Shown here piece by piece: positions 17,081 through 57,726 of a stretch of 64,000 bases of DNA. Where the stretch lies: assembly GCF_902713615.1 (NCBI RefSeq), contig NC_052149.1:98153121-98217120 (forward strand), read 5' to 3'. Below the pieces are notes generated by a model, which was given only the letters and a program-made list of their open reading frames with translations, did not search any database and had not been told where the DNA came from. This stretch comes from Scyliorhinus canicula. Lineage: Eukaryota. Both the position numbers and the translations under genes were made by a program. Each line of letters begins with the position of its first letter. Within the stretch, counting starts at the first letter, position 1.

Positions 17081-17099
17081 CCTGAGCAGGGGTTTAAAA

Positions 17100-19460: not shown

Positions 19461-19589
19461 GTGTGATGCCCAGTCATCTACAGAATCACATGATCACTTA
19501 TCTCTCACTGTGTGATATTATCTGCTTGTTTAACAAATTAGGACAAAATTCAAAATTGCACACCAAAACCAAAGTGCATTGACCTTTAA

Positions 19590-22689: not shown

Positions 22690-22915
22690 AGGGAGGCATG
22701 GTGGTGCAGTGGTCAGCACAGCTGCCTCACGGCGCTGAGGTCCCAGGTTCCATCCCAGCCCTGGGTTACTGTCTGTGTAGAGTTTGCACATTCTCCCCGT
22801 GTTTGCATGGGTCTCACCCCCACAACCTAAAAGATGTGCAGGCTATGTGGTTTGGACACGCTAAATTGCCCCTTAATTGGAAAAAAACATTGCATACTCT
22901 AAATTTAAAAAATAA
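22690..22915 (+). mobile_element. Short poly(A)-tailed V-SINE
   Basis: Same family as 8649-8878. Confidence 0.85.
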
Positions 22916-25296
22916 ATTGCTCTATAGATTTGAATTCCCAGTGTACCTGCCCAATGCACAATGCCATGCGCCAGGGCCACTAAAGAGTAAAGCCTATTTC
23001 AAAATTTGAGATAACACAAACATAGTTTGTCATGAAATTATCAGGCAAGGAAAGGCCTGAGGCTCAATGGCCCAATTTTCAGATCTGTGCCAATTTGCAT
23101 TTGTGCAACCAGATGGAAAATTTACCCCATAATTAAAACCTTGTACTGTAAAGCAGATTTCTATCCTATTTAGAAATAGACCTGAGAAAAATATCCAGAG
23201 TACCTCAACTCCTTGTTTTAAGCAAATAGTATATGCATATTTATCTTTTACCACTTCTTCCTTTGCCCTAACATCTTCTTCTATCTCAGAAAGCCTGACG
23301 TCTCCACTGTGAATTCAAAGGCACTGTGAACAGCTAAACAGACAAGGTACGTGCTTACTGAAGGGAAAAGGAGACAGAGCCGCACTTGATCTACTGTGAC
23401 AGAACACTTCAACCTTGTAAAGTAAAGCAACTTTCCACTGGCAGCTTGTCAGGAGACTGACCAAATTTATTCTACATCTGGCAGAGATATTCGAGTGTCA
23501 ATCTATGCCGGAACACTAATTCACAACTGCAGGATCTCAACCAGTGTTAGATAAGGCTGAGCTTGTACATTTGACTTGCAACCTCAGATATGGCTGGCAC
23601 AGAAAGGAATCACTTGTTTGGCTGTGTCGTGAGAAATGCAGGGGCTTGACTTTTCAGCAAGTATGATTTACAATCATGTCGGATAGGATTTTCCACTTGT
23701 GAGGAAGTCAAATACTAATATTCTCCCATATGTGGTCATGCTACAAATATCATAAGGCATGTCAATATTAGTATCCCCAGGTGGTAGCATTTGGACGTCA
23801 CACCTTACCTACTATGTCAAGTTAAATCTCTAACCTCCTACCTCAGGACCAGGATAATCAGGGTTATTTTTCTCGAATAAGCATCATGCCACAGAAATGC
23901 GTTTCTTTCTTTGGAGGATTCTTTATCACAGGCCTCACCTTATTCCCATCACATTGCAGATGAAATAACGACTCGTGTGAAGCTAGGTTAATAAATATGC
24001 TGCATTGCTTACCCCCCCCCCAACTCCCATCTCTGCCCCATTCAAAAATGTCAGTTGTTTTGCAAGCCCATAAATGCGGTCTCTAAACTAGGATGCAGAT
24101 TTCAAAATGGACCAAGACTAACTTTTGATTTATAAACTAGTCACCACTGGCCTCTTGGCATTTCTATTCTCTTGAAAATCTATCCCCACCCACAACATAT
24201 GACCTATCTGGTACATTGCCTTGATATACGATTGTGCGTTGCAACACATATAATTTTGATCATATCATTTTTTTTACAATGCAAATAAATGCACAATGTA
24301 AAATTGTAATAATACCATGAAAAACCATTTACCAGCACACCTGTTAACAGACTAAAAATTCCCTTAAACAGTCCAAATAGCCATATAAAGGAAGTATTAG
24401 ATTTTGCTATTTCTTTATTACAGGCATTTATTCTTTATGTAGTTAATGATGATGAAGAATTATAGTAATGTGTTTAGTAATAAAACTGGCTTTATTCCAA
24501 CATGATTCCATCCATCTGTATGGTCCATCAACATTGCCAAAAAAAATTAATATCCATCACTAAACCTTATCCTTACTGCTGAGAATGATGGACTGCTTTC
24601 ATTCTTTGCCGATATTAAAGCAGATAACTAATTGGAGGGAGCCAAGAGCTCTCTCTCTTAAAACGATCAGCTTATTTCATACATGTTATGTGGCTTGTAG
24701 CTTAATTTGTGCAATCTGAGTAATAATAGATTCAGTCTGTCTGTTGTTAAAACACAGTACTCCCAGAACGATAGAGATCTGCTCACTGCGCAGGAAAATA
24801 CCGATATCAATGGAAAGTAGCAAAGCTACTTGGTCTCTACTGCTTCTGCTTTTTGTGGCCTATCAACAGCAGCTTTTTGTAAATTGTACGCTGCAGGCTG
24901 TCTCTCTTCCATGATAATGTAGCCAGGCCTTATATCTTAATTTTCAATGCATAGAGTCTGTTGTGAAAACAGCCGATAGGAATGCCAAGTCTCAACCAAA
25001 TACCATCACAAATTAACCAATGTGACAGCTTCTTTGTTCCCATACTTTCCATGGTATAGTCTCACCTTTTTTTTGGACCAGTTTGGGAACAATAAACATA
25101 AAGGAATAATTCTGGAATATGTGAAGATGACTATGATCTTGGTACCAATATGAGAGTGATGGTGGGCGATGCATGTATACGTACAGCAGTCAGCTGAATT
25201 CACCTAATAATAACTTAAGGACATAATTCACTGGGAGCTTTCAGGTGCCATCATCTCTTGAAGAATGAAAGCCACCCTTAAAAGTGAGGAAGAGTG

Positions 25297-28921: not shown

Positions 28922-29877
28922 GGGCTGGGAATCTTCGATCCTCCACACTGGAATCGCACCGGGTGCGGGGCCGGAGAATAGCCGTTCACGCCGGAAATCC
29001 AGCGCGACGGCACTTCCGTAATTCTTTGCGGACCCGCCAGTCCCACACGCGAGGCCAATGCGGCACCAGTTGGGGGCCGTTAGTACCACCCGGCGGGAGC
29101 TGGGACCCGCTGCCGCGGTAGCTGTCCTGGTGGGGGGACGGGGGGAATCTGACTCCGGGGGGGGGTGCTCAGCAGTGGCCAGACCCGCAATCAGGGGCCA
29201 CCGAATGATGGGCCATTGCGACCTGGGAGGAACCTACCTTCCTCCGCGCGAGCCCGCTGAGTGGCTCCACCATGTCACCGCCGTCCGCGCCGAGGTGGGC
29301 CCCCATGTGAATGCACGGACCCGCTTATGACCGCCATGCGCATGGGCAGCCGCGCGGTCTGTACAGCACGGTAGCATGGTGGTTAGCATAAATGCTTCAC
29401 AGCTCCAGGGTCCCAGGTTCGGTTCCCGGCTGGGTCACTGTCTGTGTGGAGTCTGCACGTCCTCCCCGTGTGGGCGTGGGTTTCCTCCGGGTGCTCCAGT
29501 TTCCTCCCACAGTCCAAAGATGTGCGGGTTAGGTGGATTGGTCATGCTAAACTGCCCGTAGTGTCCTAAAAAGTAAGGTTAAGGGGGGGTTGTTGGGTTA
29601 CGGGAATAGGGTGGATACGTCGGTTTGAGTAGGGTGAGCATTGCTCGGCACAACATCGAGGGCCGAAGGGCCTGTTCTGTGCTGTACTGTTCTATGTTCT
29701 ATGTACAGCAGGGCCCCGCCGGCAGCCAGAGCCACGGGATGAATGCCCGGGCTCTGCTAGCCCCCTGGAAAATAGAGAATCACCCGGAGCTTCGAGGAAA
29801 AAAAAAAGCCCAGACTGCTTCTCGCCCATTTTCCGGCAGGCATGGGGACTGAGACCCCAAAAGGGAGAATCCTGCCC
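28922..29877. mobile_element. Harbinger-type MITE containing a V-SINE
   Basis: Ends GGGCTGGGAATCTT / GGAGAATCCTGCCC; TSD not preserved. Confidence 0.7.
29364..29703 (+). mobile_element. HE1-type V-SINE with CR1 tail
   Basis: Near-identical to 61923-62266; flanked by TGTACAGCA repeats. Confidence 0.9.
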
Positions 29878-33945: not shown

Positions 33946-34030
33946 GTTTTTTGACTGTAGAATGTTTCTCATCCCATGATAAGACAGCTAGTCAAGGCAG
34001 GGCAAGGGGAAGTGCGGGCCATTTCAGTTA

Positions 34031-34300
34031 TGGGCGGCACGGTAGCACAATGGTTAGCACTGTTGCTTCACAGCGCCAGGGCCCCAAGTTCAATTCCCGG
34101 TTTGGGTCACTGTCTTTCCGGAGTCTGCACGTTCTCTCCGTGTCTGTATGGGTGTCCTCCAGGTGCTCAGATTTCCTCCCACAAGTCCCGAAAGACGTGT
34201 TGTTAGGTAATTTGGACATTCTGAATTCTCCCTGCTTTTCACAGTAACTTCATTGCAGTGTTAATGTGAGCCTACCTGTGACAACAAAGATTATTATTAC
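34031..34300 (+). mobile_element. V-SINE with gtgacaacaaagattattatt tail (third SINE family)
   Basis: tRNA head, V domain and a distinct 3' tail. Confidence 0.8.
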
Positions 34301-36787: not shown

Positions 36788-37106
36788 TCCTACAGTGCAG
36801 AAGGAGGCCATTTTGCCCATCAAGCCTGCACCGACCCGCTGAAAGAGCACCCTACCTAGAGTCAGGCCTCCATCCTATCCCAGTAACCCCACCTACCCTT
36901 TTGGACACGAAAGGGCAATTTAGCATTGCCAATCCACCTAACTTGTGCATCTTTGCACTGTGAGAGGAAACCGGAGCACTTGGAGGAAACGCATGCAGAC
37001 ACAGAGAGAATGTGCAGACTCCACACAATCACCCAAGGCCGAAATTGAAACCGGGTCGCTGGCACTGTGAGGCAGCAGTGCCAACCACTGTGCCACCGTG
37101 CTGCCC
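36788..37106 (-). mobile_element. HE1-type V-SINE
   Basis: Head, V domain and CR1-type tail. Confidence 0.85.
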
Positions 37107-37791
37107 AACCTGGCAGTAAGAGGAGTTGGAGTCAGGAGAGGCCCTTGAAGGTAAGTCCATTTTGTTTCCAGTTCCTTGGATGCTCCTTGGATCCCCACAA
37201 GCTACTTTTGAGATTTCCCCTTCCCCATGCTTCAGACCTCCTCCACTAAGCAGAAGGTCCTCCTGACTCACTGTTTATCCGCTTACCAAAGTGTCGGGAG
37301 CCTGTCCTTTAGGCGTCTTGCTTTTTTGCTCCCAGCCGAAATCTCCTCCTTGGTGCTAGACAGCTGCCACTTCCCATCAGCCAAGGTGAGAGACTGATTA
37401 CATCAGTAGAGGTGGGGCCTTGGAGTTATAGCTTCCTGAGCTTCACATCTGCCTCAAGCTCATCATCATGACTCCTGCGACAAGTTCAAATTGGACCCAG
37501 GATCTTTTTAATCCATTTGAACTGGTAGGAAACATAGGTTGATTCTGTCCAGCCTTGTTAAGATAGGAACCAAATGGACTCACACTTTACAGGCTCAGGT
37601 TCCCAGGATTAAAAAGTAAATTAACTTGACATTGTCAGGATTAATAGTGACATTTCTTTCAGTTATTAATTTCAGCCCTAAAATAGTTACATTAACTGGA
37701 AGAGAGATCAGAACATGCTGCACATACTTACGAGATATCCCTTACTAAAAGATGTAGGGTGAAAAAGCACACCCTTTCTCTTGGTGACTCA

Positions 37792-38656: not shown

Positions 38657-40599
38657 CTCCTATAATATGCCCAATGAAGGAAGCTTTTGACAAGATTTAG
38701 GGTGCGATTTAATGGAAAAGGTTCTTAGTCTCATATCAGGCACGAATTCCTGGATCTTTCTCGATGGCCATATCAGTGAGGTCGCGACCGTATTAATGGC
38801 ACTTAGTGCAAAAAATTATTCCCACAAGGTTCAAGCCAGTATTGGCTCTTCCGCCAGCCTGATTCACTCACCACGCACATGGCAGTTCCTTGCTTTTAAA
38901 TCTCCCTCCGAACTCACTCCCAGTCAGCACATGAGCATGGCACCATGCAGACCTGCTCCAAGCTTTGGGGTTGCAAACCTTTCCATGCTGCTGGTGCTGT
39001 GGAGGAGAGCTGGAACATCTTATTCCTCCGAGCTGGTTGGAGGACCAGCAGCATAGCACCCAATGCCATCTGGGAGACAGTGCAACAGTCGTCAGTTTGC
39101 ACAACATGACCAGGAGGACCGCCATACAGTGCAAGAAGACCAACGATCTCTACTGGGCCGCAAGGGTAAGTTAACACCAGCCCCTGGCATCAGTGCCAAC
39201 TGCCACTTCTCCTGACCCTCGCCCCCCCCAACCACCCCACCACCACCAACAGGTCAGCAGTTGGCATCTCACATTCACCCAGATCCGATCTCTGCACTTT
39301 TGCCCCAGCACACCCTGGCACCCTCAGCACAACTCCTCCATGTTGAGATGCGATGCCTACACATACCACCTGCCATAGGCCCCATTGATTCACCAATGCC
39401 CCCTCTCTGTCCCCACAGGAGGTTAGCCCATAATAGGCATGGAAGGATCCAGATGGGCGGCGGAGTTCAAGACATCAGAGGCCAAACTCCCTATGAGGAA
39501 TGGGCTCTGGAGATCACAGAATTGGCCGAGGAGGGAGCAGTCACTGACAGCAAGGTTGGCCTGTGCTGCAGAGGTGAGGATCCATTGCCCCTTCACCCAA
39601 ATAACCTGCCTCAAGTGAATTGTTCATGTCATACAAAATGACCCTTCCCTCCCACTGACCACATGTGCCTTCTCTTGCAGGATCTCCACCTGATGAGGCT
39701 GGGCAGGGGTCCGTCCACCCGCTACCCAAGAGAACACCTTAGAGTACAGCTCCAAGGAAACCACCATCAAGGCATAACAGCTGTCATCCCCACCTTCCAC
39801 CAGCGCAGGGATACACACCTCAGTGGACGACACCAGTGGAAAGGCTTCTGTGGCACAAACTGGTGAGCACCCGACAGATGCTGATGCACATCAGGTGGAG
39901 GCGGGAACATCCAAGGGAGTCAGCAGTCGCAGGTTTGCTGGATCTCGGGACTCAGCTGAGTCTCATTCAGATGTCGAGCATCCGGGCAAGGTTATCTCGC
40001 AGCTGATGTAGATGCTTGGGCATGGCCATGAGTTTCAGGAGGGAATGTCAGCGACACTCTGGTGAGTGCATAGCCGATTGGAGGAGTCCCAAAGGTTACT
40101 GGCGCAAGAGATGGGGCTGGCAATGTATGGCACTGAGGCCAGCACTGCTAGACATAACAGGGTGGCACAGCGATGCCAGTGACACCAATAGGTTGTCCAG
40201 GGCCCTCTGGCTCTGGGCCCTTCAGAGGACATCAGTCAAAGGCATCAAAGGCCACATGGCGTGAGAATCAGCAGGCTGCCCCACCTCTGATGTGCATCCT
40301 GGGGACACATCTAGACCTAGCGACAGAGCACAGAAGATTAAGAAGATTGAGGACTACTGAGTGGGTACTGGAGGGCATCGAGGGGGAGGCTAGGGAGAGT
40401 GGAGGTTTCAAATGTTCACCATTAAACATCTAACACCTGATACATGTGAAGCCTTTGTCATGTTATTCTGCACAGTGGGCCTGCACCCCCCCCCTCCCCC
40501 CACTCCCTGTTGTCCTCCACTCCCTTCACCCCCTGTCACCCCAGACATAGTTGTCCGAGATCCAGTTCAGTGGATGGGTGTGAGTGCACTGTCAACAGA

Positions 40600-40679
40600 A
40601 AGACGGGAGTCAGACTTTGGCATAAATGGAGGAGTACCAAAGCTAACCACACAGCGAGTTATCATCACTCTCCTGCCTT
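40600..40679 (-). ncRNA. Box C/D (K-turn) snoRNA-like motif in Harbinger copy B
   Basis: AAGGCAGGAG A GTGATGA [48 nt] CTGA CTCCCGTCTT; canonical boxes and a 10-bp stem with one mismatch and one G-U pair, in K-turn register. Confidence 0.6.
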
Positions 40680-40931
40680 GGTTATGGACCCCCTGAAGTG
40701 CGGACACAGCCGCATTACCCTGGGGTTATGCTACACTGACCCTGGGAAGGTGGAACAGAGTAGTTGGGGAAGGTTGGGGGTTTATGGGAGGGTGGGGGAA
40801 TGGGGGGAGAGAGGATATGGGTGGGAAGGAGGGAAATGGGGTGGTGGGGTCAATGGGGGGGAGGGGGTCAATAGGCAAAGTTGAGGGGGTGAGTGGGGGG
40901 AAGGATGTGAGTTGATCGACAAAAATTTGCC

Positions 40932-41580
40932 CTATGAGAAGCAGGCAAGGATGAAGGCCTCCCGAGACCAAAGGGCATGCCGGACTATACCACTGCCTGT
41001 CCTCCATCTTCCGGTTGCCCCCACAGGTCCTCCCTGGACACGTCCTACAGCCCTCCTGGTACCAGCCCCTCAGCATCCTCCTCAGACAAGGCCGCATGTC
41101 CCTCCTCCTCTTTGAGCATGTCACCCCGCTGCTGTGCCAGGTCCTGGAGGGCACAGCAGACCGACACAAAGCAGGAGATCTTCTGGGGGGGGGGGTGTAA
41201 TGCAGTGCTCCACCAGAGCGGTTGAAGCAACGCAATTGCATTTTGAGCAATCTGATGCACCGTCCAATGACAGCACGGATGGCAGCATGGGCCACGTTAT
41301 ATCGCCTCGGTCTCCGGCCTCTGCAACTGCCGTCATCTGCCAGGACCTCAGCGAGTATCCCATATCCCAAGAGCCAAACCGTGTCCCCCTTTGGGTTCGT
41401 CCTCGGCCTGATGGGAGACCGGATGGCAGGGTGTGTGGCAACCCCATGCACATGGGGTGCTGCCTCCAGCCAGCGTCGACTCTGCTGCTGCCTTCTCCAG
41501 CATCTGGCCACCTGGGCTGCCACCAGCACCGCGAGGGCTGCTGCTGCGGGGTCAACAACACCATCCATTGTATCTGTATG
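40932..41580 (-). pseudogene. HARBI1-like transposase remnant (copy B), internally deleted
   Basis: MDGVVDPAAAALAVLVAA N-terminus; YNVAHAAIRAVIGRCIRLLKMQLRCFNRSGGALHY; ends REAFILACFS*. Confidence 0.75.
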
Positions 41581-42450
41581 GAATTGGAGAAGGAGCGAGG
41601 CCCACAAACAGTTAATGCTTCCACCCCGGGACCCTCAAATCCCCCCAGCCCCTTACGTCTGCCACCTTCTCTCAGAGTGACATCCACCAATCCAGTTGTG
41701 CTGGAGAACCCCGCTTTGCACACTCACCCATGCCTACAGCAGGAGCACCGAGACCCCAGATCCCTGCCGAGAACATCAGGGAGACCATGCTCAGGTACCC
41801 TCCCTGATTCACACACATCCTTTGGTCACGAGGATATCCCGAGTGCTGAAGCCCACCTTTTGAGTATCTGACTGTGAGCTGCTGCCTCTATCTTGCTGAC
41901 ACATCTAGGCTTCATGGAAAGTGTCCAGATCTCACCGTTTGATTGGAATGCTTTGCAATAAAACTTGTCTGAGACATGTACGTATACCCATGAGAATGCA
42001 CTTGGGAATATTTGGTTTAGTAAACTGTCAATAGTAACAAAGAATTGAAAATAAACTATGTAACATTCCACATATCACACTAACTATTAAACAACAAGGA
42101 AACATCACTGCTCCATATTGGTACCAATACAAAGCTATAACAGATCAGTTTCACAGAAAAAAACCAAATACCCAGTATCACATTCCATAGGTTCCTGTCG
42201 TAGAAATGGGGCGCGATTCTCCGCTCCCGCGCGGCATAGGGAAGGCCGTCGTGAACTCGGCCGAGTTTCACGACGGCTCGAAACGACCCTGTTCATGAGC
42301 AATTCAGGCCCTGGAAATGGGCTAGGAGCGGGGCCGCGGGAACCACGTGGGGGATGACGTCAGAAACCAGCGACGCCCGAATGACGACAGAATGACGGCG
42401 CTCCGCGTCGTAAAAAGGCGCGAGCGACGAGAACAAGTGAGGGGGAGAAG

Positions 42451-44829
42451 ATGACGGAGCCACGGAGGGCCGCCCCGAGGTTCAGTGAGACTGACCTCGA
42501 GACCCTCCTCGATGAGGTGGAGCAACGGAGGGGCATCATCTGCCCTAGCAAAGGGCATTGCCACCCTGCCAGCGTTGTGCGACGGGCCTGGCACGAGGTG
42601 GGCATGGCAGTGAGTGCTGTGGGGCAGACCCCTCGGTCTGGGGAGCAGTACCGGAAGAAGCTCCACGACCTCACCAGGGCTACCAGGGTAAGTGCCAAGA
42701 GGGTGCCCCCGGGTCACAACAATTCCCCCCCCCCGTGTCCCTCATCACCCACCTCCCCCCCCCCCCCCCGGGCACGAGGGGGAGGGGGGCGAGAGTGAGT
42801 GGAGAGTGGCTAACCAAGTTGTCACAGGCCCACATGAGCGCTGCGACCCTCTGGAGAGATGCCATGGTTTAGCTGCAACTTTCCCCCCAACCTGTGCCAA
42901 TATCTGAACGCCCTGATGATACCTGCCGAATTGTCATGATCTATCTATGCCCCCCCCAACAGGACAAGACTGCTCACAACAACCGGGAGCGCAACAGGAC
43001 TGGAGGGGGTTCACTCATTATGCACTCCCTGACCGTGTTTGAGCAGAGGGCACTGGACCTTGCTGAGGGATCTGCCACCCGGGAGTTCGCGCTATGCGAG
43101 GTTGGCGGTGCAGAACCAAGTGAGACAACCCTGCATGACAACCCCCCCCCCCCCCCCCCCCCCAGCCCTTCCTCTGTGCCCTCACACTCTGCCCACTGGA
43201 CCATCCATCCTCTCTCACCTCACACTCTGCCCACTGGACCATCCATCCTCTCTCCCCTCACACTCTGCTCACTGGACCATCCATCCTCTCTCCCCTCACA
43301 CTCAGCCCACTGGACCCCCCATCCTCTCTCCCCTCACACTCTGCCCACTGGACCATCTAACGACCGGCCGAGCGTGTCTAAATAACCACGTCTTATTCTG
43401 TTCCCTATGGCGTGCTGCCGAATATCCAGGGCCGTCTGCTGCCACACCCAGCTGAACATCCGCCGCCACCACCGCACCCAGGGCCGCACTCCAGAGGGTG
43501 GCAGGAGGTCAGCAAGGGGTGCCATCCTCCCAACCCGGGACTGTCGAGCAGGACGCACTCATGACAGCGACACAGTCAGCAGACTCACATGAGGGAGAAG
43601 CAGACATGGGCCGCGTGCGCCCTGCGGCCGGATATGAATGGGAGAATGACACTGCAGAGATTATGACGGACGAGGACCTTGAGATTGCGGCACTGCTATT
43701 TCCCACACCATCCACCATCCCAGAGACACTCACCTCGGTTGGGCAATTAAGTGATGAGGCTCCTGGGTCACAGTCTGGTGTGCACCACACAGCTGAGCCG
43801 GTACAGCAGGTGGAGGTCGGAGCAGCCGAGGGCCCGGACTGTCAGAGGGCAGCCCAGGCCCAGCATTCAGCTGGCTCCCAGACGTTTCCCGGGTTCCTGG
43901 ATTTACTTGACCCACCCGCAGAGCCGATGCATTTTGAAACCCAGGGACACAATGACGGGATGAGGGCCGTCTTCCAGCAGCTGCAGACGCAGTTAGAGGA
44001 GTCGAACCGCGTCCAGGAGCAGGGAGTGGTGCCGCTCATGGCAGCCACCCAGGCTGACACCGCACGGGTGGCGTCCGCGGTCGAGGCAATGGGTGAAACG
44101 GTTTCAGCCATGGGTCAGGTTCTGCAAGGAGTTGGACTTAATGTGCACGCGTCATCCCTGGCCCTGGAGAGGGCTGCCCTCTCACAGGCAGCAATGCGCC
44201 AGAGCCAGCATGACATTGCCGGCCCGCTACGGGCCCTGGCCGAGTCTCAGCAGGTCATGGCCCAGTCCCAGCAGTCAGTCGCCGAGAGCATCAACCGCAT
44301 GACGCACGTATGGATGGCGTCGTGCACTCACAGGTTGAGGTTGCACAGTCTCTGGTGGGAATGTTTCACTCCCTGGACTCCGTCTCTGCGAATGTTCGGA
44401 CCCTGGTCGATACCGTTGCAGGCCTCCAGGGCTGGAAGAGCCAGGTGTCGGTGGGGGCGAAGGGACCCGCTCGCACCTCCGTCCCACAGTGAGGCCCGGG
44501 GGCCACCGGGCTCCCCGAGGGAGGAGGAGGTTCTGGGACCCGTCCCATTAACTCCATCACGGGACGTCCCTGAACGCTTAGCCTCCCACCGTCCCATCCC
44601 TGGTGCATCGGGTGGGCAGCAGGCAGAGCAGGGTGGCACCGCGTCATCCGAAACGCCCGCGGAGCAGCCTGGCCCATCAAGGCCAGGTCGCCCCAGGAAA
44701 CGAGTGCCGACGGGGAGACATGTCGCAGGGGGTGATTCTCAGCAGTCCGCCTCCACTCCTCCTGCATCATCTGGGGATTCACTTAGACGGAGTGGTAGGG
44801 CCCGTAAGGCAACGAAGAGGGACACATAG
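42451..44829 (+). pseudogene. Harbinger Myb/SANT-like (trihelix) partner gene, 3 exons (42451-42687, 42963-43119, ~43409 or 43430-44829), ~600 aa with coiled coil and AT-hook; one in-frame TGA
   Basis: PRFSETDLETLLDEVEQRR...AWHEVG...RSGEQYRKKLHDL, donor AGG|gtaagt, acceptor cccaacag|DKTAHNNRERNRTGGG, phase-1 donor A|gtgaga. TGA at 43453-43455. RPGRPRKR at 44680-44703. ATTAAA at 44897-44902. Confidence 0.85.
43179..43357. repeat. 38-bp minisatellite (~4.7 copies) in Myb intron 2
   Basis: Unit ctcacactctgcccactggaccatccatcctctctccc starting at 43181, 43219, 43257, 43295 and 43333. Confidence 0.95.
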
Positions 44830-45119
44830 TAAGTTGGCACGGGTGAAGGGCACAGATTAGTTGTAGGGGCTAGGGCATCTGTACATAATGTTAACCATTA
44901 AACTCACTGTTGCACGTAACTTGTAAGACCGTGTGATTTCTCCGTTGCCACAGGAATCGTAAGGGTGACCGAGTGTCGCTGGGGTTGACGAGCGGTGAAA
45001 CTTCAGTGCCGGGTGTGCAGTCCCTTCCCCCCCACCCCCTCCCACAGCTACCACACGCGGGCACGTGGTGGAGTGTCCCTGACGAACTCAGCGACCACCG
45101 AGATGGATGGTTCAGCTAT

Positions 45120-45197
45120 TGCCATGAGTCAGACTTTGTCTAACGATTCTGAGCTCACAGCTCATCGCAGAGCGGGCTGTCATCATTCAACATGGCA
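45120..45197 (-). ncRNA. Box C/D (K-turn) snoRNA-like motif in Harbinger copy A
   Basis: TGCCATG TTGA ATGATGA [47 nt with GAGCT-gtg-AGCTC hairpin] CTGA CT CATGGCA. Box C at 45180-45186, box D at 45129-45132, perfect 7-bp terminal stem. Confidence 0.65.
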
Positions 45198-45222
45198 CTG
45201 ATCACACCCGCTGACACAGCCA

Positions 45223-46677
45223 TCAATGTTGTGCCATACCGTCTGGACCCAGTGATAAGGGTGATTTGGCACTGGAGCAGTGTCCGCAGAGCAGGGGGGG
45301 GGGGGGGGAGTTGTGTGCTGACCGTCTGCACGACTGGCGATGCAGGTGGTAGGTGGACCGTCGCACGCGGCGCGTGATTCTTGCTGCCATCAACGCGTCG
45401 CGTGCCCGCTGTCCTCGCGGGTACTGTCGTGCCGCCTCCTGGACATTACCAGCACCCGGGTCGTGTCTGCGTGCTGCGCCTGGCACACCTCCTCCAACCT
45501 CCTCCTCCACCTCCTCCTCCTCCTCCGTGTTGGCACCACTGCCACTTGCTTCTCCCTTCGACTCCTGCAGTAGGTCATCTCCCCTCTGCATTGCGATGTT
45601 GTGCAGCGCACAGCAGACCACTACAATGCGAGCGACCCTGTCGGGCTGGTACTGGAGGGCCCCTCCGGAGCGGTCCAGGCACCTGAATCGCATTTTCAGG
45701 AGACCAAAGCAGCGCTCCACCACACCCCAGGTTGCTGCATGGGCCTCATTGTAAAGTGTCTCCGCGTTGGTCTGAGGCCTCCGTAGGGGTGTCATCAGCC
45801 AAGACCTCAATGGATAACCCCTGTCACCCAGCAACCAGCGCCTCAGCCGGGGGGTCCGTCCCTGAAACGGAGCAGGGATGAACGACTGCGCAAGAATGTA
45901 CGCATCATGCACACTGCCAGGGAACCTAGCGCACGCGTGCATGATCTTCGTGTGGGGGTCGCATACCACCTGGATATTCATGGCTTATGTCCCCCTCCTG
46001 TTTGTGAACACTTCCCTGTTGCCTGCAGGCGGGCGCATGGGGATGTGAACACAATCAATGACCCCCTGGACCATCGGTATCCCGGCCACATTGGCATATG
46101 CACGGGCTCGTGCTTCTTGATTTGCTCGGTCCTCGGGAAAGGTAATGTAGCGATCGGCGATGGCATAGAGGGCGTCGGTCACATCCCGGATGCACCTGTG
46201 CACCAATGCCTGCGAGGTCCCGGAGAGGTCCCTGCTCGGAGACTGGAAGGAGCCAGTCGCATAAAAGTTAAGTGCCACCGTCACCTTGACGGCAACCGGG
46301 ATCGCGTGTCCTCCTCCCGTTCCACGTGGGGCGAGGTGCGCCACGAGGTGACAGATATGTGTCACCGTCTCTCTGCTCAACCGGAGTCTCCTCCTGCAGG
46401 TGATGTCCGGCATTGTCTGGAATGAGATCCGGGCACGGAAAACCCTAGGCCTCGGTCATCGCCTCTGGTGCCTTGGCTCCACCATCAATGTCTCCTCCTC
46501 CTCCTCCTCCTCACCCCAATGCTGCTCAATGACGGGCCACTCCGCGGCCATTCCCCCTGCTACCGCAGCTGGCCCTGCATCCATTGTGGGATGTCGCTGT
46601 GGACGCTGCTGGATCTCCAACTGCAGTGCAGCGGCCCCAACCACTGCGCTGAACATAGCCGTTCTGTTCGCATACAT
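45223..46677 (-). pseudogene. HARBI1-like DDE transposase, single frame with two nonsense codons
   Basis: ORFs 46677-46456, 46413-45985 and 45981-45223 are all in one frame, with stops TGA (46456-46458) and TAA (45985-45987). Catalytic motifs GVIDCVH, LLGDRGYP and VVERCFGLLKMRFRCL. Upstream ctaac...ctgtaag suggests a 5' UTR intron acceptor. Confidence 0.92.
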
Positions 46678-46989
46678 TCTGATAACTTACAGAAGGGTGG
46701 TGGGGGGCAGAGAAACGACATGTTAGATGGAGGTTATTCGACACCTCAGCAGCCGCCTGCCACGGGATACCTGTGTGTCCCGGTGGCTTGGTCGCGCTGC
46801 TGATACGCGGCCAGCCTAACCCCTGGTTACTTTCTGCGTCCAACAGGCAGTTAACAACGTTCTCCTCACTGGTGCGTCAGTGGGCTGTGGCTGTAAGCCA
46901 CAGGGCAACCAGCGGCCGTGTCCTCGTCAACGTCCTGCCATGGCAGGGCGGCTGACATGTTGCATCCGGGGGTGGACGACCCACTCCAC

Positions 46990-48508
46990 TCACTCCTTCT
47001 CTCCCTCCCCTCCACTACTCCCTCTCTCCCTCCCCCCCTCCCACTACTCCCTATCCCCCTCCCACTACTCCCTCTACCCCCTCCCACTACTCCCCCTCCC
47101 CCCTCCCACTACTCCCTCTCCCCCCTCCCACTTCTCCCTCTCTCTCCCCCTCCCACTTCTCCCTCCCCCCTCCCACTACTCCCTCCCTTCCCCCCTCCCA
47201 CTACTCCCTCCCTCTCCCACCTCCCACTTCTCCCTCCCTCTCCCCCTCCCACTTCTCCTCCCTCTCCCCCTCCCACTACTCCCTCTCCCCCCCTCCTACT
47301 ACTCCCTCTCCCCCTCCCACTACTCCCTCTCCTCCCCTCCCACTACTCCCTCTCCCCCCTCCCACTACTCCCTCTCCCCCCTCCCACTACTCCCTCTCCC
47401 CCTCCCACTTCTCCCTCCCTCTCCCCCTCCCACTTCTCCCTCCCCCCTCCCACTACTCCCTCCTTCCCCCCTCCCACTACTCCCTCCCTCTCCCACCTCC
47501 CACTTCTCCCTCCCTCTCCCCCTCCCACTTCTCCCTCCCTTTCCCCCTCCCACTACTCCCTCTCCCCCCTCCCACTACTCCCGCTCCCCCTCCCACTACT
47601 CCCTCTCTCCCTCCCACGTCTCCCCCCTCCCACTTCTCCCTCCCTCTCCCCCTCCCACTTCTCCCTCCCCTTTCCCCCTCCCACTTATCCCTCCTCTCCC
47701 CCTCCCACTTCTCCCCCTTCCCACTTCCCCCCCCTCTCCCCCCCACTTCTCCTTCCCTCTCCTCCATCCCACTTCTCCCCCCTCTCCCCCCCTCCCACTT
47801 CTCCCTCCCTCTCCCCCCTCCCACTTCTCCCTCCTTCTCCCCCTCCCACGTCTCCCCCCTCCCACTTCTCCCTCCCTCTCCCCCCCACTTCTCTCTCCCT
47901 CCCCCCCACTTCTCCCTCCCACTCCCCCCCTCCCACTTCTCTCTCCCTCTCCCCCTCCCACTTCTCCCTCCCTCTCCCCCTCCCACCTCTCCCCCCTCCC
48001 ACTTCTCCTCCCTCTCCCCCCTCCCACTTCTCCCTCCCTCTCCCCCTCCCACTTCTCCCCCTCCCACTTCTCTCTCCCTCTCCCCCCCACTTCTCCCTCC
48101 CTCTCCCCCCACTTCTCCCTCCCTCTCCCCCCCCACTTCTCCCTCCCTCTCCCCCCTCCCACTTCTCCCTCCCTCTCCCCCTCCCACTTCTCCCTCCCTC
48201 TCCCCCCTCCCACTTCTCCCCCCTCCCACTTCTCCCTCCCTCTCCCCCCACTTCTCCCTCCCTCCCCCTCCCACTTCTCCCCCCTCCCACTTCTCCCTCC
48301 CTCTCCCTCTCCCTCCCACTTCTCCCTCCCTCTCCCCCCTCCCACTTCTCCCTCCCTCTCCCCCCCCCCACTTCTCCCTCCCTCTCCCCTCCTCCCACTT
48401 CTCCCTCCCTCTCCCCCCTCCTACTTCTCCCTCCCTCTCCCCCCTCCCACTTCTCCCTCCCTCTCTCCCCCTTCCACTTCTCCCTCCCTCTCCCCCCTCC
48501 CACTTCTC
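46990..48508. repeat. ~1.5-kb polypyrimidine/polypurine minisatellite (variants of CCCACTTCTCCCTCCCTCTCCCCCT)
   Basis: Almost G-free plus strand with recurring CCCACT(A/T)CTCCC units, inside Harbinger copy A upstream of the transposase. Confidence 0.95.
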
Positions 48509-51080
48509 CGTGTTTCTGCGCGCGAAACCCGATGACAGAAATTTGGCCGGTTGGAGAATAGCGGGAGCGCGTCGGTCCGGCGTCGCGTGAAAATCTGGTG
48601 CAGCCCGCTATTCTCCCAACCGGCGTGACATCGGAGAATCGCGCCCATGATCTGTCCTTCATTGTGTGACGTGTCCCACGTATCAGCGCCATTCTCGTCC
48701 AGGAGCTGCAGCTGTGCAGGCCCTCCAACATGGCCCAATCTCACCGGAACCAAATCCTGGCATCCACATATTTCACTGGCACTCAAGGTGCAGTTGAACA
48801 TCCTTGACTTCCAGTGAGTTTAACCCGCGGTGATGTGCCAGTTACCTGCAGCACTCACCACACCAGCAATAAAAACAACATCAATCTGCAAGTGTTTCTT
48901 CAACGGCATCATCTAGCAACACATTTGGAACAATGTCGCACACCAAGTTGCACAGCATCTTCATGCTGAAAAATGGATTGCCTTCTGGACTCATATGTCA
49001 CCCTGAACCCGATGTTCCAGGACCCAGGCATCTCAGAAAAAAATGTCTTTCTTTCCGTCTACAGAAAAGAACGGAAACAGCAAAACCAGCCTCCAGGCAT
49101 TTGCAGCCACCAGCGGGAGCAAGCAGCAAACACAACCTGCAGCTGTGAAGTGCTCACATAACTAACAATACCAATTCCTTAATCGCAATAGCCTTCAACT
49201 GTACAGCTGGAGGCTGCTCACAGTCAAAGCGAGTTAAAGTGACCTTCAGCACATAACCAAGAACAGGGCTCTGTTCTGAAGTGTTTGGTAGGACAGACAG
49301 TCAGCAGCTGTAGTTGCCCCTATTTTCGGTATACACAATATTGGGGATGGATTGTAGGCCCTGTAGACATTATGCCCCACACTCCCCAGCCCAGTCCCCT
49401 GCCCAGGCCCACCACCGCTCCCCACCCCTCATCCCAGCAAGTATCCTAGCATCTTTCAAAAGCCCTCTTCAAACTTCCAGCAGCAATAAGTGAACAGTAA
49501 AGGTGAGTATGCCTTTAAATAAAGCTTGAAACCCTCAGCAACAAACTTGTTTATTCACAATCAGATAGGCATTGTTCAGAGAGAAAGGTTTCCGTACTAA
49601 TCAACCCTTTTAATGATCCTCCCTCCATTCCTGGCAGCCACTTCAAATCCGTTGCCATATCAAATGGAGTTCAAATTCTTTGCCAAGATGAAAGCTTGCA
49701 CTAAATTTCAGCTAACTTGGCACTTCAGCTAAAGACTCCACCTTGGCCACCTGGGATGTCCGTTAGTGCCAATAGAAGCCGCTGAAAATCAGCTCCTCAC
49801 CCACATCCATTTGAGGAAATTGTTCTCTTCCGATCCCACCCATTCCAAATTATGTTGTGGAGGTGCGTATTGTTAGAAACAACCTGGGTTACATAGGCTG
49901 TTCCAGACATCCTGAAAATTATACCTCAAACTGTTAGTTGATGTAAAAATCATAGAGCTTTAACCACTTCTGTTTGGTCAAGTTTGAATTAGTTAGCTCA
50001 TTTAATTAGGAGATTCAAATCCACTTAAAACACCCAATAACCAGTTCAAACAATGTTTTAATTGCTTTCAACAGTGCCCCTGCCACCGTGATTAGCCTGC
50101 TATGGAGATTTTATTCAGAATGGAAGCAGAATTTGGCACTAGGCATTAATGAGTATGGACAACTGATCCAACCGTAACAGAAGCTATCTGTTCATCTTGA
50201 CAAAACCTTTCTCCCATTGAAAAAAATAGCCTTTTAGCCACAAACGCTTAATAAAAAGAAATCATTCGTGCATTTTGTATTTCTGTCGTTTGGAGTCTTT
50301 CTGTTATCTTCGATTATATTGGCATAATTCATCTTTGTGGAAATGTTCCACCACACAGCTGCAACACATTAAGTAATCAAACAGGATAAGGACTGATTTT
50401 CTCATCTGAATTCAGTGCGATCAGTATGTTGAACATCTTTTGGAGACCTAGCATTTCTGTCATATCTGGTAATGAGTAAACAATACATTCCAGCTGTTGC
50501 GGGGATTAGCATACTCTGGAGGCGGCAAGGTTTCAGTGGAACCAGAAAAGGAAAACTTTTCTACATGTTCTGTAATTTAGGACTCTCTAAATTATTATTT
50601 GTCACATAATTTCAGTCTTTCTATCTTGTAAACCGGTGATAGACGTAGTTAGATCGAACTTTGCAATGAGAACCTTTATGTTGCAATAACTCAACCAAGG
50701 AGTAGATTCAACAATTCCAATCACAATATTTGGACTGTTGATTCAAGATATTTAATTTGAAATACAAATCCAAAAAAGGTTCAGAACCTGGATGTCACCT
50801 TCACATTTAAGCTTTTCAGAGAAGCTGATCCTTCGGAGTAAAAACAAATAATGGAAATACTAAAGGGAAAGACATTTTGAAAGGTAGGTTTTATTATTTT
50901 ATTGTAAAATGTGTATTTTTGTGTCGTTATGTTCTTATTTTCAGCATTGGAAATGCCAATGTCAAAGCAATAGCCAAAAGAGCTTTGACATTTTACTGAG
51001 CGAATTAATTGTTCCAGTTTCTGCTTTTTAATTGGAAGATTTCCCTCGGAGAGTTCTGATTTTTAAAAATTGTTTTATGA

Positions 51081-51400
51081 ACAGCACGGTGGCACAGTGG
51101 TTAGCACTACTGCCTCACAACGCCAGGGATCCGGGTTCAATTCTGGCCTTAGGTAACTGTGTGGAGTTTGTACCTTCTCCCCGTGTGTGCGTGGGTTTCC
51201 TTCGGGTGCTCTGATTTCCTCCCACAGTCCAACGATGTGCAGGTTAGGTGGATTGGCCATGATAAATTGCCCCTCAGTGTCCAAGGACGTGCAGGTTAAG
51301 TGGGGTTACAGGAGTAGGGTGGGAGATTGACTGTAGGCACGGTGCTCTTTCAGAGGGTCGGTGCAGACTCAATATGCGGAATGGCCTCCTTTTGCACTGT
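51081..51400 (+). mobile_element. HE1-type V-SINE
   Basis: Head, V domain and CR1-type tail. Confidence 0.85.
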
Positions 51401-52140: not shown

Positions 52141-53847
52141 AGTTGGTGAGGGACCATCCCCTATTCTGTGGAAAGTGGGGTGATCTCCACGCACAGCGAC
52201 GGTGAAGATCGACACTGATGGGGTGGGGGTGGGGGGGGGGGGGGGGGGGAGAGAGGCGGGAGGGTGGAGAAGATGGTCAGGAAGTGAATATAACCGTGGG
52301 TTGACCCCAGTGAAATACACTAGGGGGAAGGGTGCACGTAGAAATAACAATACAGCGCATTGCAGGCCCTTCGACCATCCAAGCCTGCGCCGACCATGGT
52401 ACCTGCCTAAGCTGGAACCGTATATACATACGGTAGTGAATATAACAATTGCTCTGAGTAGTGGGGGTCAATCGTGGAGTTGTGTGGCAGGCACACAAAG
52501 TAGTATGGGTTGGTGGTCTGTTATCTCTGGAGGGGAAAGACGGCTCAGCGTGAGCACTGATGATGAAGGTGCTCTGAGATTCTGACTAGTGAGAGGCGAG
52601 GGACAGTTCGAATTGCAAATAGCATGCAGGGAGGAGAAGAAGGGATGGGGAGTCAAGGGTGAAACAACACATAAACAAAGAAGATGTGCGTGCGTGGAGC
52701 ACACATGATGGGGCAAGTTCCATCAGAAATCCTGTGCCATGCTTATTGGGAGGCATCAGATTGTCATCATTTGGATACCGTAGGATGTTTGTGCTCCACA
52801 AACCTCAAAACATTGCGCTCCGATCTCAACCAATTGGTGGTGGTCTCCTCGATGGCGGGGCGGGTCCCAGTCAGCCATGGCCGTTAGTGTCCAATGCACG
52901 TTGGCCTTCCCAAATGAGGAAACCGACATCACCTTAATTTCTGCAAGGTCTGGGCTCCAGCCCTTGTATATTTGCAAACTGCAGCCTGTCTGTGTCTCTG
53001 TGTTGACCAATTTCCTATCGATATGTGCAGGTGGCCATTTTGGATGCCCACATGTTGGCTGGGGGCTGCCGTGGGTGTGGCCCTGGGTGGTTCCCTGGAA
53101 GATGGCTGCCAGTTGTGTGAGGTATTCGATGCCGGGGGGGGGTCTGTGGCCGGGAGGGGTTGGGGGATGCGGAGGGGGGCACACCCATATGGCTGGTGCC
53201 ACTGTGTAGAACCAGGGGCCAAGGTGGGTGGTCAGTGGGTGCCCCAATCCCTCGGGGGCACCCCGGCTGCTTGACCCGCCCTCCCCTCGCTCCCCCTCCC
53301 CTCCCCTCGCCGCAGCCAGCAAAGCCGCTCTCCGGGCCAGCAGCCCGGGTTCCGACCACTCCAAACCTTAGCCAAGAGAAGGCTGTGCTGGGTTCGAACA
53401 TGTTTAGATGAAATGCGGAAAGGTGGGGGTTGAGGGAGTGGGGCTGGGGGGTGGGGGGGGGGGGATCATGTATGGTGACAGTGTGATAGAAGGAACGCAG
53501 ACATTAGGCGTCCGATAATAACAGAAACTATGCTTGGTCCCCCAGGACCTGGAGACAGCAGCCCCAGGATGTCACCCGGCAGATGGAGAAAGCACAACCA
53601 ATACTTGGTGGGATCATTCCTGGGATTGGGTCTCTGACCTTCAGAGACACCCCATTGTTTGACTCCGCCCTCACCTGGCTGTCATGCTGATCCCGTTTAA
53701 CTTGATCTACCTCATCATCCTCACGGTCCAATTCCGTAGGTGGACAGCAGAGATCATGGAGCGCCAGGACCTGGGATTCATGTTTACTGCATGGGCCCCT
53801 TTAATCCATCCAGACCAACGATGCCCGGGGACTCATACTTGTTTTCG

Positions 53848-54193
53848 TAGAATTTACAGTGCAGAAGGAGGCCATTCGGCCCATCGAGTCTGCACCGGCT
53901 CCTGGAAAGAGCACCCTACCCAAGGTTAACACCTCCACCCTATCCCCATAACCCAGTGAAACCCCACCCAACACTAAGGGCAATTTTGGACACTAAGGGC
54001 AATTTATCACGGCCAGTCCACCTAACTTGCACATCTTTGGACTGTGGGAGGAAACCGGAGCACTCGGAGGAAACCCACGCACACACGGGGAGGAAGTGCA
54101 GACTCCGCACAGACAGTGAGCCAAGCCGGAATCAAACCTAGGACCCTAGAGCTGTGAAGCGATTGTGCTATCCACAATGCTACCGTGCTGCCC
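53848..54193 (-). mobile_element. HE1-type V-SINE
   Basis: Near-identical to 60957-61302. Confidence 0.9.
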
Positions 54194-55049
54194 ACTGTGT
54201 TTTGCACTGTGTATTCAGGTTGTCTTGTATATGACCTTTGTAGAACTGTAAATTTTTAAGGCCAGCCTGTTTATATTGATCTGCACTATCGGTTGTATGT
54301 TCTACAGTTTGTATTCCTCCACTTCTGTATCGAGTTTTCAATATTGTCCCACCTCTACATTATCTTACAGTACGGACACTTCCATTTCTCTGACCATATT
54401 AGGTCCATTATGGAATGTATATTTATATTTGTCTTTGTTATTTGTGTATTCTGAATTAGGGAGTTGTGCATGTAGAGTTAGGGTCCGACCTGATGGACAG
54501 GTGACTGGGGATGCAGGGCAGGTATTTGTCCGAGTGTGTGATCCACCATGCTTAAGTCTGTGGACTTCTGAAATGGCTGCCCACAAAGACATTGGGCACC
54601 GCATGGACACGGACGGGCTGCAGCTTGCAAATGTACAAAGGCTACAGCCCAGATGGTGCCTCGGGATACAAAGGTTGAACCCGGGGGGTGCCTTTCGGAC
54701 CCTTGGGTCTGCTCCGCCATTCGCTCTCTCAACTTTTTTCATTTTCATTTCAACTACCGGCAGCCACAGCGGTGATACCTTCACTCGCCAAGGAGAAGAA
54801 TATACACTTCATCCACAGAGGGACACAGATGAGCAGCAACAAACATGCAGCACTGCCTGACAACGGATTACAGATAAGGCCACATGTGCTATGTACTTGC
54901 CAGTCACCTGGACGTGAAATTAGGGTAGTTCCTGTGTGTCAGTTTAGAGTGCAACTTGTACATGTGTGTTCACTGTGTGTGTGTGTAATAAACTATGAAT
55001 GTATTGAACAACTGGTCAAAAGTCCACCGTATATGGGTTACAGACACAC

Positions 55050-55841
55050 ACTATGGTTTGGGAGGTATAACAGGGGTCGGGGGTGTGGGCTGCGGGGGGG
55101 TGTGGTGTCGGTGAGGGGGTTGGGGGGTGTGGGAAGTGTCCACACATGTGTCATGGGGATGCGCAACTAAGTAGGTCTCACTTGCTTGCCCGCCACCGAC
55201 TTCCACCTCAGTGATCTCCCTTTCCTCTGGACCGCCGACCACATCTAGTGCCCTCTGCTCGGGCACGGTGATGGGCCGCAGGTCTGGTGGTTCAACTCCG
55301 GTCATCTCCCGCTCCCGGCAGTTAAGCATGACCTTCTCCTGGGGGTGGGGGGGGATAGGGTATGGGTGTGTGTGTGTGGGGGTGGGGGGTTAGTGCCAGG
55401 GGCATGGAGCAGCCAACTCACCCTGGCTGATCTGAGGAGGTTGTGCAGTCTCTCCCGTGTGGATGACGTTGCCCACAGCACTGACTGCGTCTGCCACCTG
55501 CGCCCAAGCACGGTGAACGGCGGCGCCTGGTGGCTTTCCCCCCGGGTCAGGGTACAGGGCCGTCCGCCTCTCCCCCACGGCGTCCAGGAGGGTGTCCAGC
55601 TCAGCATTCCTGAAGGATTGTTAAGTGTGGCTGCGGCGTATGAGTCTCATATGCGCCAATCACGGACCTGGTGAATCCGCCGTCGTTCCGCAAGGAACCG
55701 GTTGTGTTCGACGTGGTGATGGTGCTAGCCCATTTAGAGTTGCTGAATCGGTGCACCTGTTGCACCATTTTTTCTGTCATAAAACACCACTGTTTCCATG
55801 CCGGCGTCTGCACTTAGTCCCAAAATCGGAGAATGCAGCCC
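55050..55841 (-). mobile_element. Harbinger left end with Myb exons 1-2 (remnant)
   Basis: TIR GGGCTGCATTCTCC ending at 55841; VHRAWAQVADAVSAVG and MLNCREREMTGVEPPDLRPITVPEQRALDVVGG. Confidence 0.75.
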
Positions 55842-56438: not shown

Positions 56439-57726
56439 GGGCGAAATTCTCCAGTTCGGAGACTAAGGGCGCAATCTAATGAAAGGTTTCCAAGTGGGGT
56501 AACGAGCGGGAATTGCTGAGTGCTTCCAAACAGCCGACTCAGCAAGACAGCTACCGCTATCTAATGCCAATTCGAGCTGGTAATGATGCCCTATGGGCTT
56601 CACGTCTGAAATAACTGTCCCACCGACTGATTCTCCTGGACCGCTCGCAGCAGCTCTCTGCTAACGAGACGGGAGCAATACTTAAACCGATCCTGCAGTG
56701 CAAACATCAAGCAGCATACAGTCATGCCACCGCACAGATCAGCTCCACAATTCGGAGATGCAGACCTGGCAAGACTGTTGGATGCATTGGAGTCAAGAAG
56801 CAATATTCTGTTCTCCCGAAGGGGTCAGAGAGTCAGCCAGAAGGCAGCCAGCACTGGAGGGAAGGCTCAACGACCTCCACTAGGCCATAGAGGTGAGTTG
56901 GCACCAGTCCCCTGGCACCGGTCCCATCTGCCACCGGTCCCATCTGCCACCCTCAGCTCCCCTGCCCCCCTCCGAAAACGCTGCGGTTGCACCCCTCCCC
57001 AAGACAATGCCATTTCTGTGCCCCAGCACACCCTGGCACCCACAAGCACACCCCACCATTCCCAGTGGCGGTGCCCACACCTGTCTCCCGCTATATCCCC
57101 TCCCCTCTCTCGGCGATGCATGAAGTGTGTGGCTCACGACGCCCTCTCTTTATTCCCGCAGAAGAAGTTGGCCCATAACAGGCGAAAAAGGGCCCAGACT
57201 GGCGCCGAGGTGCCAGATATCAGAGTCCTCAACCCCTATGGAGAATGGGCCCTGGAGGTTGCGGGGGTGGCCGAGGGCAGTGCGGTCACCGACATCGAGC
57301 TGGGCCTGTGCCAGAGAGGTGAGTATCTACCGGCCCCCACCCAGATGACCTGTCACATGTGAGTTGTTCATGCCAGAATAATGATCCATCACTCCCACTG
57401 ACTACATGTTCAATCTTCCACAGCACCTCCAGCGGATGGTGTCAACCCAACCGGGATGGCACCACTCCCCCCTCCCCGGCCTTCTAAGAGATCCAAGAGA
57501 ACACCTCGGAAGAGAGCTCCGAGGTTGCCACCAGAGGCGTCAGGGCTAACATCCGTGCTCTCCACCAGTGCAACGACACACCTCACTGGGCGAAAGTAGT
57601 GGACAGGCCTCTGGAGCACAATCTGATGAGCACTACACAGATGCTGATGCACACGAGGTGGAGGCAGAATGTCCAGGGGGGACAGCAGTCAGACGTCTGC
57701 TGGATCCCAGGCCCTGCTGGGTCCCG
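56439..57726 (+). mobile_element. Harbinger left end with Myb exons 1-3 (remnant)
   Basis: TIR GGGCGAAATTCTCC; MPPHRSAPQFGDADLARLLDALESR; cccgcag|KKLAHNRRKRAQTG; intron positions match copy A. Confidence 0.75.

Follow-up and report, generated by a model that had tools for sequence, protein, structure and literature searches.

A conserved box C/D-like motif in K-turn register between the convergent genes of catshark Harbinger transposons

Introduction

The vertebrate intronic box C/D snoRNAs (SNORD) are RNAs of ~80 nt with a C box (RUGAUGA) near the 5' end and a D box (CUGA) near the 3' end, whose terminal stem closes on a 3-nt bulge, tandem G.A pairs and a U.U pair, forming a K-turn, and whose interior is largely unstructured. 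Almost all vertebrate snoRNAs are intronic. The catshark module described here shares these boxes, this size, the terminal stem with its K-turn register and the largely unstructured interior; however, it has no Rfam match and no clear C'/D' boxes. It also differs from the SNORD class in its location, inside a DNA transposon and downstream of the transposase stop codon, and in its very many copies.

The nearest mobile precedent is that of the L1-mediated snoRNA retroposons (snoRTs) of mammals, which are retrocopies of host snoRNAs with their own target-site duplications, represent independent insertions, and have been recorded inside DNA transposons (Weber 2006, PLoS Genet, PMC1687206). The catshark module resembles them in that snoRNA-shaped sequences have been spread through a vertebrate genome by a mobile-element mechanism. 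In contrast to the snoRTs, the Harbinger module belongs, as a fixed internal part, to an autonomous cut-and-paste element; it occupies one and the same position in three diverged subfamilies, and its conservation goes along with that of the element.

Box C/D snoRNPs also cap or protect the end of larger RNAs, the sno-lncRNAs and SPA RNAs of mammalian host loci, and a box C/D RNA, v-snoRNA1, is encoded by the herpesvirus EBV. RNA evidence exists for all of these.

The vertebrate PIF/Harbinger elements, among them zebrafish Harbinger3_DR and the HARBI1-like genes, share with the catshark elements a DDE_Tnp_4 transposase and a Myb/SANT-like partner gene, but the conserved block between the convergent 3' ends was found in copies of the catshark lineage only. 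In full-text searches on Harbinger together with snoRNA, and on catshark Harbingers, no paper was found to describe such a module for a eukaryotic DNA transposon. New here are a sharp island of conservation, a perfect 10-bp stem in the paralog majority, and homologous stems in two copies of the element (A and B) with three compensated pairs.

Results

Position and geometry of the copy B module

The window, that is the whole stretch of DNA analyzed, comprises 64,000 nucleotides of Scyliorhinus canicula (contig NC_052149.1, positions 98,153,121 to 98,217,120). A preliminary description of this DNA had pointed out an 80-nt string whose strand was unstated; the string is the exact reverse complement of window positions 40600-40679, and the motif is therefore located on the minus strand. 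This box C/D-like module, in copy B of the transposon, is composed of a 5' stem half AAGGCAGGAG (40679-40670), a bulged A (40669), a C box GTGATGA (40668-40662), an interior of 48 nt, a D box CTGA (40613-40610) and a 3' stem half CTCCCGTCTT (40609-40600). The K-turn register that had been claimed for it was confirmed, as a 3-nt bulge A-G-U is followed by G.A, A.G, U.U, G-C and A-U. The 3' stem arm begins directly after CTGA, and its first C pairs with the last G of the 5' arm. Nine of the ten stem positions are paired, eight by Watson-Crick pairs and one by G.U, and the remaining position is an A.C mismatch.

The C and D boxes are legible as such on the minus strand only. Given that a G.U pair becomes A.C on the other strand, the G.U pairs of copy B and of a further copy, C, together with the box orientation, fit the minus strand only. 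From the box orientation and the G.U pairs only, we infer that the folded strand is RNA and that it corresponds to the minus strand.

The box pair alone is no commoner than chance: TGATGA-N30-60-CTGA was seen seven times in the window versus 7.1 expected. At the spacing of copy B and over both strands, in-register pairing of at least 9/10 was found at 1.35e-3 of window positions, and pairing of 10/10 at 7.8e-5, so the copy B stem exceeds chance. When both strands were strictly scanned for RTGATGA...CTGA closed by a stem in register, the copy B site and one weak 4-bp candidate were the only results. This candidate (52713-52781, minus strand) shows four consecutive pairs, 7/10 in all, has no homologue in the window and is probably due to chance.

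Harbinger context of the module

The assignment of copy B to Harbinger in the preliminary description is borne out by its surroundings. The C-terminal DDE region at 41033-41402 aligns with the DDE_Tnp_4 region of copy A and also aligns, as protein, with catshark HARBI1-like proteins, the copy B ORF itself being too decayed for Pfam. The remains of the copy B transposase extend over 40726-41607 (minus strand) and show a nucleotide match to 45479-45861 of copy A. In copy A, the transposase ORFs (45223-46413, minus strand) contain the Pfam domain PF13359 (DDE_Tnp_4, E 2e-30), which was also found in the copy C transposase (12216-13053, E 2e-16). Among proteins, the transposase ORFs of the window come closest to HARBI1-like proteins of Scyliorhinus torazame and S. 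canicula (72-75% identity), which points to a catshark-type genome. Convergent with its transposase, copy A has a Myb/SANT-like partner gene (42451-44829, plus strand; PF13873 Myb_DNA-bind_5, E 1e-11 on 42451-42798), the homologous 3' part of which remains in copy B (39110-39962 and 40150-40427, plus strand). A comparison of the C-terminal 100 residues of the Myb-like protein with the protein collection, seeking paralog Logan contigs, gave no hit. A fourth, partial copy of the Myb-like Harbinger gene is located at 56837-57723 plus 55175-55614 and is 66% alike to 39110-39962; no C/D-like block was detected downstream of it.

The module is located between the transposase and the convergent Myb-like gene, in copy B some 220 nt past the decayed transposase. 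Alignment with intact relatives shows that the ancestral transposase ends in a ...RARDxLIAARF motif, which puts its stop near 40915 in copy B and near 45390 in copy A; according to these positions, the module is on the transposase strand and follows the transposase stop at a distance of about 190-235 nt. Directly past the Myb gene, each of the three copies shows a plus-strand ATTAAA (40421, 44897 and 11378). In copy B, this poly(A) signal of the Myb-like gene occupies 40421-40426 and the module lies ~145-180 nt beyond it, so that the module would be outside the Myb mRNA if the signal is used. On the minus strand, neither AATAAA nor ATTAAA is present between the transposase stop and the Myb 3' end in any of the three copies; since the transposase strand shows no canonical poly(A) signal before the module, the module may itself set the 3' end of the transposase transcript.

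A C/T-rich run (40760-40905, minus strand) is found between the transposase stop and the module, and a matching G-rich run downstream of it, at 40480-40545. The lengths of these runs vary among paralogs, as seen from troughs of depth and from contig joints which skip 80-446 nt. PIF/Harbinger elements are characterized by terminal inverted repeats and a 3-bp target-site duplication; an inverted-repeat scan of 41600-47000 showed the C-run/G-run and other internal pairs only, and none where the ends of the element are expected. The conserved block that holds the module is absent from three more distant Harbinger-type loci, namely a Logan contig (L001), a Heptranchias locus (L003) and a HARBI1-like gene of Rhincodon (L002).

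A conserved island in paralogs of two organisms

Contigs aligning to 39900-41399 with at least 82% identity were taken from two sets of a second organism (X4 and X5), from DNA of the window's organism (X1) and from oligo-dT RNA (X13). At this identity, paralogs of two catshark-type organisms match a non-coding island on the minus strand which holds the module (40566-40696). Over the block, 40600-40699, the depth was 7000-7900 in X4 and X5 and 3200-3400 in X1. On its two sides it was 43-67 and 17, respectively, at 40500-40549, and 30-300 and 23-84 at 40700-41049. The coding peaks reached 22000-24000 in X4 and X5 and 7675 in X1 for the transposase at 41100-41149 (13000-24000 over 41100-41199), and 20000-25000 and 5177-5850 for the Myb C-terminus at 40250-40349. 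The paralog depth of the block is thus 25- to 200-fold that of the non-coding flanks and about one third of the best coding peaks. Furthermore, paralog contigs of 274-342 nt align over 40566/40572-40696 only, their own flanks being unmatched, and contig joints are found at 40680, where the 5' arm ends on its outer side, as well as at 40565/40566. Depth, contig ends and joints indicate that the block is a conservation island of a very large family in two organisms.

The island exceeds the stem by 17 nt upstream and 34 nt downstream (minus strand), and this extension on both sides shows that the C/D unit is not the whole of the conserved element. Downstream of the 3' stem arm by 15-25 nt, within the island and outside the C/D unit, a second shared motif reads CACCCATCC in copy B, CACCTATTGCC in copy C and, more loosely, ACCATCCATC in copy A; the regions that hold it are 40566-40599 (B), 45090-45119 (A) and 11575-11600 (C), all on the minus strand.

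The paralog majority differs from copy B inside the island at positions 40571, 40595, 40605, 40627, 40628, 40635, 40640 and 40649, and none of the majority changes listed affects the two boxes or the 5' stem half. At 40605, G is replaced by A (plus strand) in 8178 of 8579 of the depth in X4, 8821 of 9204 in X5 and 3391 of 3455 in X1. This A turns the A.C of copy B into A-U, and the family-majority stem is therefore paired 10/10 in exact K-turn register. The A.C mismatch is a private mutation of copy B, which is itself a dead relic with one stem-breaking mutation. An internal hairpin of copy B (GCTTTGG/CCAAAGT) was discarded, as it is weakened in the paralog majority by 40640 A>G. The copy B locus was found without a single difference in a DNA run of organism A; the contigs of the second organism are ~7-9% different over the copy B flanks and, among those listed, none spans 40613-40740.

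Comparison of copies A, B and C

The same block is found at the same position of the element in copy A (45120-45197), copy B and copy C (11601-11678), and an nhmmer profile matched the window exactly three times, always on the minus strand (40590-40696, 45110-45214 and 11592-11687). Each element has the box motifs a single time, away from its ends, and a reading as repeated binding sites was rejected for this reason. Copy A shows the stem halves TGCCATG (45197-45191) and CATGGCA (45126-45120), a C box ATGATGA (45186-45180) and a D box CTGA (45132-45129), on the minus strand. Copy C, also on the minus strand, is decayed: it has a C box GTGATGA (11670-11664) and an in-register stem of 7/10, and the position of the D box (11615-11612) reads TTGA instead of CTGA. 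The TTGA is as expected for a decayed copy.

When the intergenic regions of copies A and B (~480 nt each) were compared, the best local alignment was that of 45188-45126 with 40670-40607 (42/64 identical), which spans from the C box to the D box plus three bases, and the block is the sole part of the A/B intergenic region, low-complexity sequence aside, which can still be aligned. In local alignments of the pairs that include copy C, low-complexity C- or G-runs outscore the block; over the block, the B majority and copy C are identical at 54 of 75 positions. Apart from the block and the homopolymer runs, no alignment is possible between the non-coding sequences of A, B and C.

The stems were compared by anchoring them on the boxes, with one bulged U allowed in copy A. 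From pair 1 to pair 10, copy A shows G-C, T.T (unpaired), G-C, T-A, A-T, C-G, C-G, G-C, T-A and G.A (unpaired), which makes 8/10; the B majority shows G-C, A-T, G-C, G-C, A-T, C-G, G.T, G-C, A-T and A-T (10/10); and copy C shows T.C (unpaired), G.T, G-C, G.T, A.A (unpaired), C-G, G-C, G-C, G.T and A.G (unpaired), 7/10 in all. The copy B stem had been described as sharing little sequence with that of copy A; this does not hold when both are anchored on the boxes, as they agree fully in five of the ten pairs. The stems of A and B are therefore homologous and not unrelated. Pairs 4, 7 and 9 are altered on both sides between copy A and the B majority with pairing retained. In copy C, four one-sided changes preserve pairing and three changes break it. 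RNAalifold, run independently on a plain MAFFT alignment, retained four outer pairs common to the three copies, of which two had changed on both sides.

In a neutral simulation, in which the observed numbers of differences were placed at random, three double-sided compatible changes together with 8/10 pairing were obtained in 1.4-2.7% of trials (p about 0.015-0.03), a value which precedes correction for the free choice of a 1-nt bulge in copy A and is based on three copies and one majority call. The covariation lends modest support to selection on pairing of the predicted stem.

The preliminary description had explained the differing stems by selection on RNA structure during the active life of separate Harbinger subfamilies. 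In favor of selection are the boxes, which are intact in A, B and the paralog majority of B, the conserved island, the family-majority stem of 10/10 and the survival of pairing through three double-sided changes; against it, the stems are homologous, the covariation is modest, copy C has only 7/10 with TTGA, and the island exceeds the C/D unit. The proposal is partly supported, in that the conserved island, the boxes, the family-majority stem and the retained pairing together fit selection on the folded strand while the subfamilies were active.

Box C/D class features and RNA data

Judged by the features of the box C/D class, a C box of the form RUGAUGA is found near the 5' end as GTGATGA in B and C and as ATGATGA in A, and a CUGA D box near the 3' end in A and B, with TTGA in C; the terminal stem in K-turn register is paired 9/10 in B, 10/10 in the paralog majority, 8/10 in A with its bulged U and 7/10 in C. 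No Rfam family reached threshold, either at the gathering score or at permissive E-values. The best match was snoZ266 for copy B (20.4 bits versus a cut-off of 43) and the archaeal sR12 for copy A (16.2 bits versus a cut-off of 38). All sub-threshold hits on the minus strand of copy B belong to CD-box snoRNA families, a likeness which, as judged from the scores, is one of generic shape with no membership of a known family. Candidates for C'/D' boxes are weak and unconserved in the three copies. In the class, an antisense element of 10-21 nt with complementarity to rRNA or snRNA ends just before the D or D' box; the corresponding 14 nt, which would be the putative guide, are different in A, B and C, and no complement of this guide beyond chance was found elsewhere in the window. 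No intronic location of the module could be demonstrated.

Members of the class are stable RNAs of ~70-120 nt bound by SNU13, NOP56, NOP58 and fibrillarin. The RNA runs listed for this organism are all poly(A)- or oligo-dT-selected, and RNAs of snoRNA size that are not polyadenylated are not expected in such libraries. The oligo-dT run X13 gave 32 reads on 1.5 kb, one or two of them on the block, with no clustered read starts or ends there. All are less than 95% alike and thus come from paralogs; they show weak transcription of the family and are uninformative on a small RNA. In view of the family match, the C'/D' boxes, a target and expression, all of them defining features of the class, the putative module was not filed as a snoRNA.

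Two other leads were set aside. A metagenome scan for TGATGATAAC-N30-55-AGTCTGACTC gave 10 loci, all of which lack Harbinger proteins and match at the seeded ends only; they were read as chance. The D box and the pyrimidine-rich 3' stem half, considered as a branch point and 3' splice site of the minus strand, are good in copy B only; copy C has no AG and copy A no pyrimidine tract, and the splice-site reading was rejected.

Discussion

A proposed functional RNA module as the best explanation

The best explanation, which we hold at about even confidence, is that the motif is a functional box C/D-type K-turn RNA module borne by the transposon, of which copy B is a decayed instance. What is seen directly comprises the motif with its register, its place within the element, its conservation in three subfamilies and in very many paralogs of two organisms, and the compensated pairing. 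In transcripts of the transposase strand, the 10-bp terminal stem would bring GUGAUGA and CUGA together into a canonical K-turn, to which SNU13/15.5K would bind first, followed by NOP58, NOP56 and fibrillarin. Such a particle would shield an RNA of ~80 nt, or an RNA end, from exonucleases, and the module may then set or stabilize the 3' end of transposase transcripts, or give rise to a stable RNA resembling a snoRNA. It is from the features above that we infer both the binding of snoRNP proteins and a role for the element. That the element uses a box C/D snoRNP-forming RNA of its own, which replaces a poly(A) signal in forming or protecting the 3' end of transposase transcripts, or releases a stable snoRNA-like RNA, seems a doubtful proposition; such a released RNA might act on the transcript of the convergent Myb partner or on a host RNA.

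A conserved cis-element that works without a snoRNP, in 3'-end formation, as a pause or termination site or as an insulator between the convergent genes, is a rather unlikely alternative, according to which the C/D look would be incidental or vestigial and the role would be to avoid transcriptional collision or double-stranded RNA. The block is midway between two convergent 3' ends, as such an element would be, on a transposase strand without a canonical poly(A) signal, and the island (40566-40696) is wider than the C/D unit and includes the motif CACCCATCC/CACCTATTGCC past the stem. G-rich runs, which resemble the MAZ-type G5AG5 elements that pause RNA polymerase II, also flank the block on both strands; however, C-/G-runs are found at 42742-42769 and 43138-43169 as well, so they are not specific to the module site. 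A plain sequence element leaves unexplained both a 10/10 stem in exact K-turn register (7.8e-5 of positions) and the double-sided changes that preserve pairing. The complete architecture of a C/D unit could instead have come from the host, if a box C/D snoRNA gene or its retrocopy was picked up by a Harbinger ancestral to the catshark copies, which then inherited its shape as a functionless passenger. Copies of snoRNAs are mobile and land in DNA transposons (Weber 2006, PMC1687206), and the absence of the block from the three more distant Harbinger-type loci compared fits a single late acquisition. This origin is distinctly unlikely: the block is 66-72% identical with its boxes intact, whereas the neighboring non-coding DNA has decayed beyond alignment between subfamilies, its paralog depth rivals that of coding motifs, and no known snoRNA family matches it.

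Conservation driven by a peptide would need a short coding segment, and on the plus strand the frame VRLWHK.RST...YHHSPAL (40607-40681) is indeed open in copy B, the paralog majority and copy C; of the codons changed between the B majority and copy C, 6 are synonymous and 8 non-synonymous, a result that random placement, with any open frame counted, gave in 5.5% of cases. This value (p about 0.055) is not significant, a stop and a 1-nt indel break the frame in copy A, similarity does not continue past the block edges, and the block lies past the ATTAAA of the sole plus-strand gene. Moreover, the plus-strand translation of the block had no shared words with a collection of 5.8 billion protein sequences. 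Coding on either strand was thus rejected as not significant and as inconsistent in its frames in copy A, and we give the plus-strand peptide very little credence. Equally improbable is a chance C/D-like string in the ancestral element that was amplified with the family. The box pair does occur at chance frequency, and, by arithmetic from the window rates, tens of chance sites with boxes and a perfect 10-bp stem would be expected in a genome of several Gb, but amplification cannot explain why the block was retained across three subfamilies whose non-coding DNA is otherwise unalignable, and the stem pairs altered on both sides are left unexplained.

Significance

Should the element indeed use its own snoRNP-forming RNA or release a snoRNA-like RNA, the reading called doubtful above, this would be the first snoRNA-type module that selection has maintained on the level of eukaryotic DNA transposons. 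Provided that the RNA exists, a selfish DNA element would be able to own box C/D snoRNPs and to keep them under selection, in contrast to a view in which host housekeeping RNAs and dead retrocopies are the sole roles of box C/D sequences. The catshark would then offer an abundant system, with very many copies in at least two organisms, for the origin of snoRNA-like genes, for the convergent ends of transposon transcripts and for K-turn particles that replace polyadenylation. Even if no RNA is made from it, the block remains a non-coding part of a vertebrate Harbinger that has been unusually well preserved, and it can usefully serve to mark the lineage.

Other features of the window

Within an intron of the copy A Myb-like gene, a C-run/G-run hairpin (42736-42811) gave sub-threshold hits to several miRNA families on both strands, which we read as a low-complexity artefact. 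Beyond the 5' end of the copy A transposase, a C/T-rich degenerate tandem repeat of ~1.6 kb (46880-48560, plus strand) has units ~80-85% alike and shows long artefactual ORFs rich in P, S and L. Adjoining Harbinger copy C, the segments 7471-9091 and 14025-14953 contain ORFs that resemble retroelement gag (zinc knuckle) and pol/protease fragments. Finally, a repeat family of ~340 bp, SINE-like in size and abundance, is represented in the window by at least eight copies, which are 74-96% alike, occur in either orientation and are located at 6016-6363, 29360-29705, 34030-34227, 36791-37107, 51082-51400, 53843-54194, 60954-61302 and 61922-62268.
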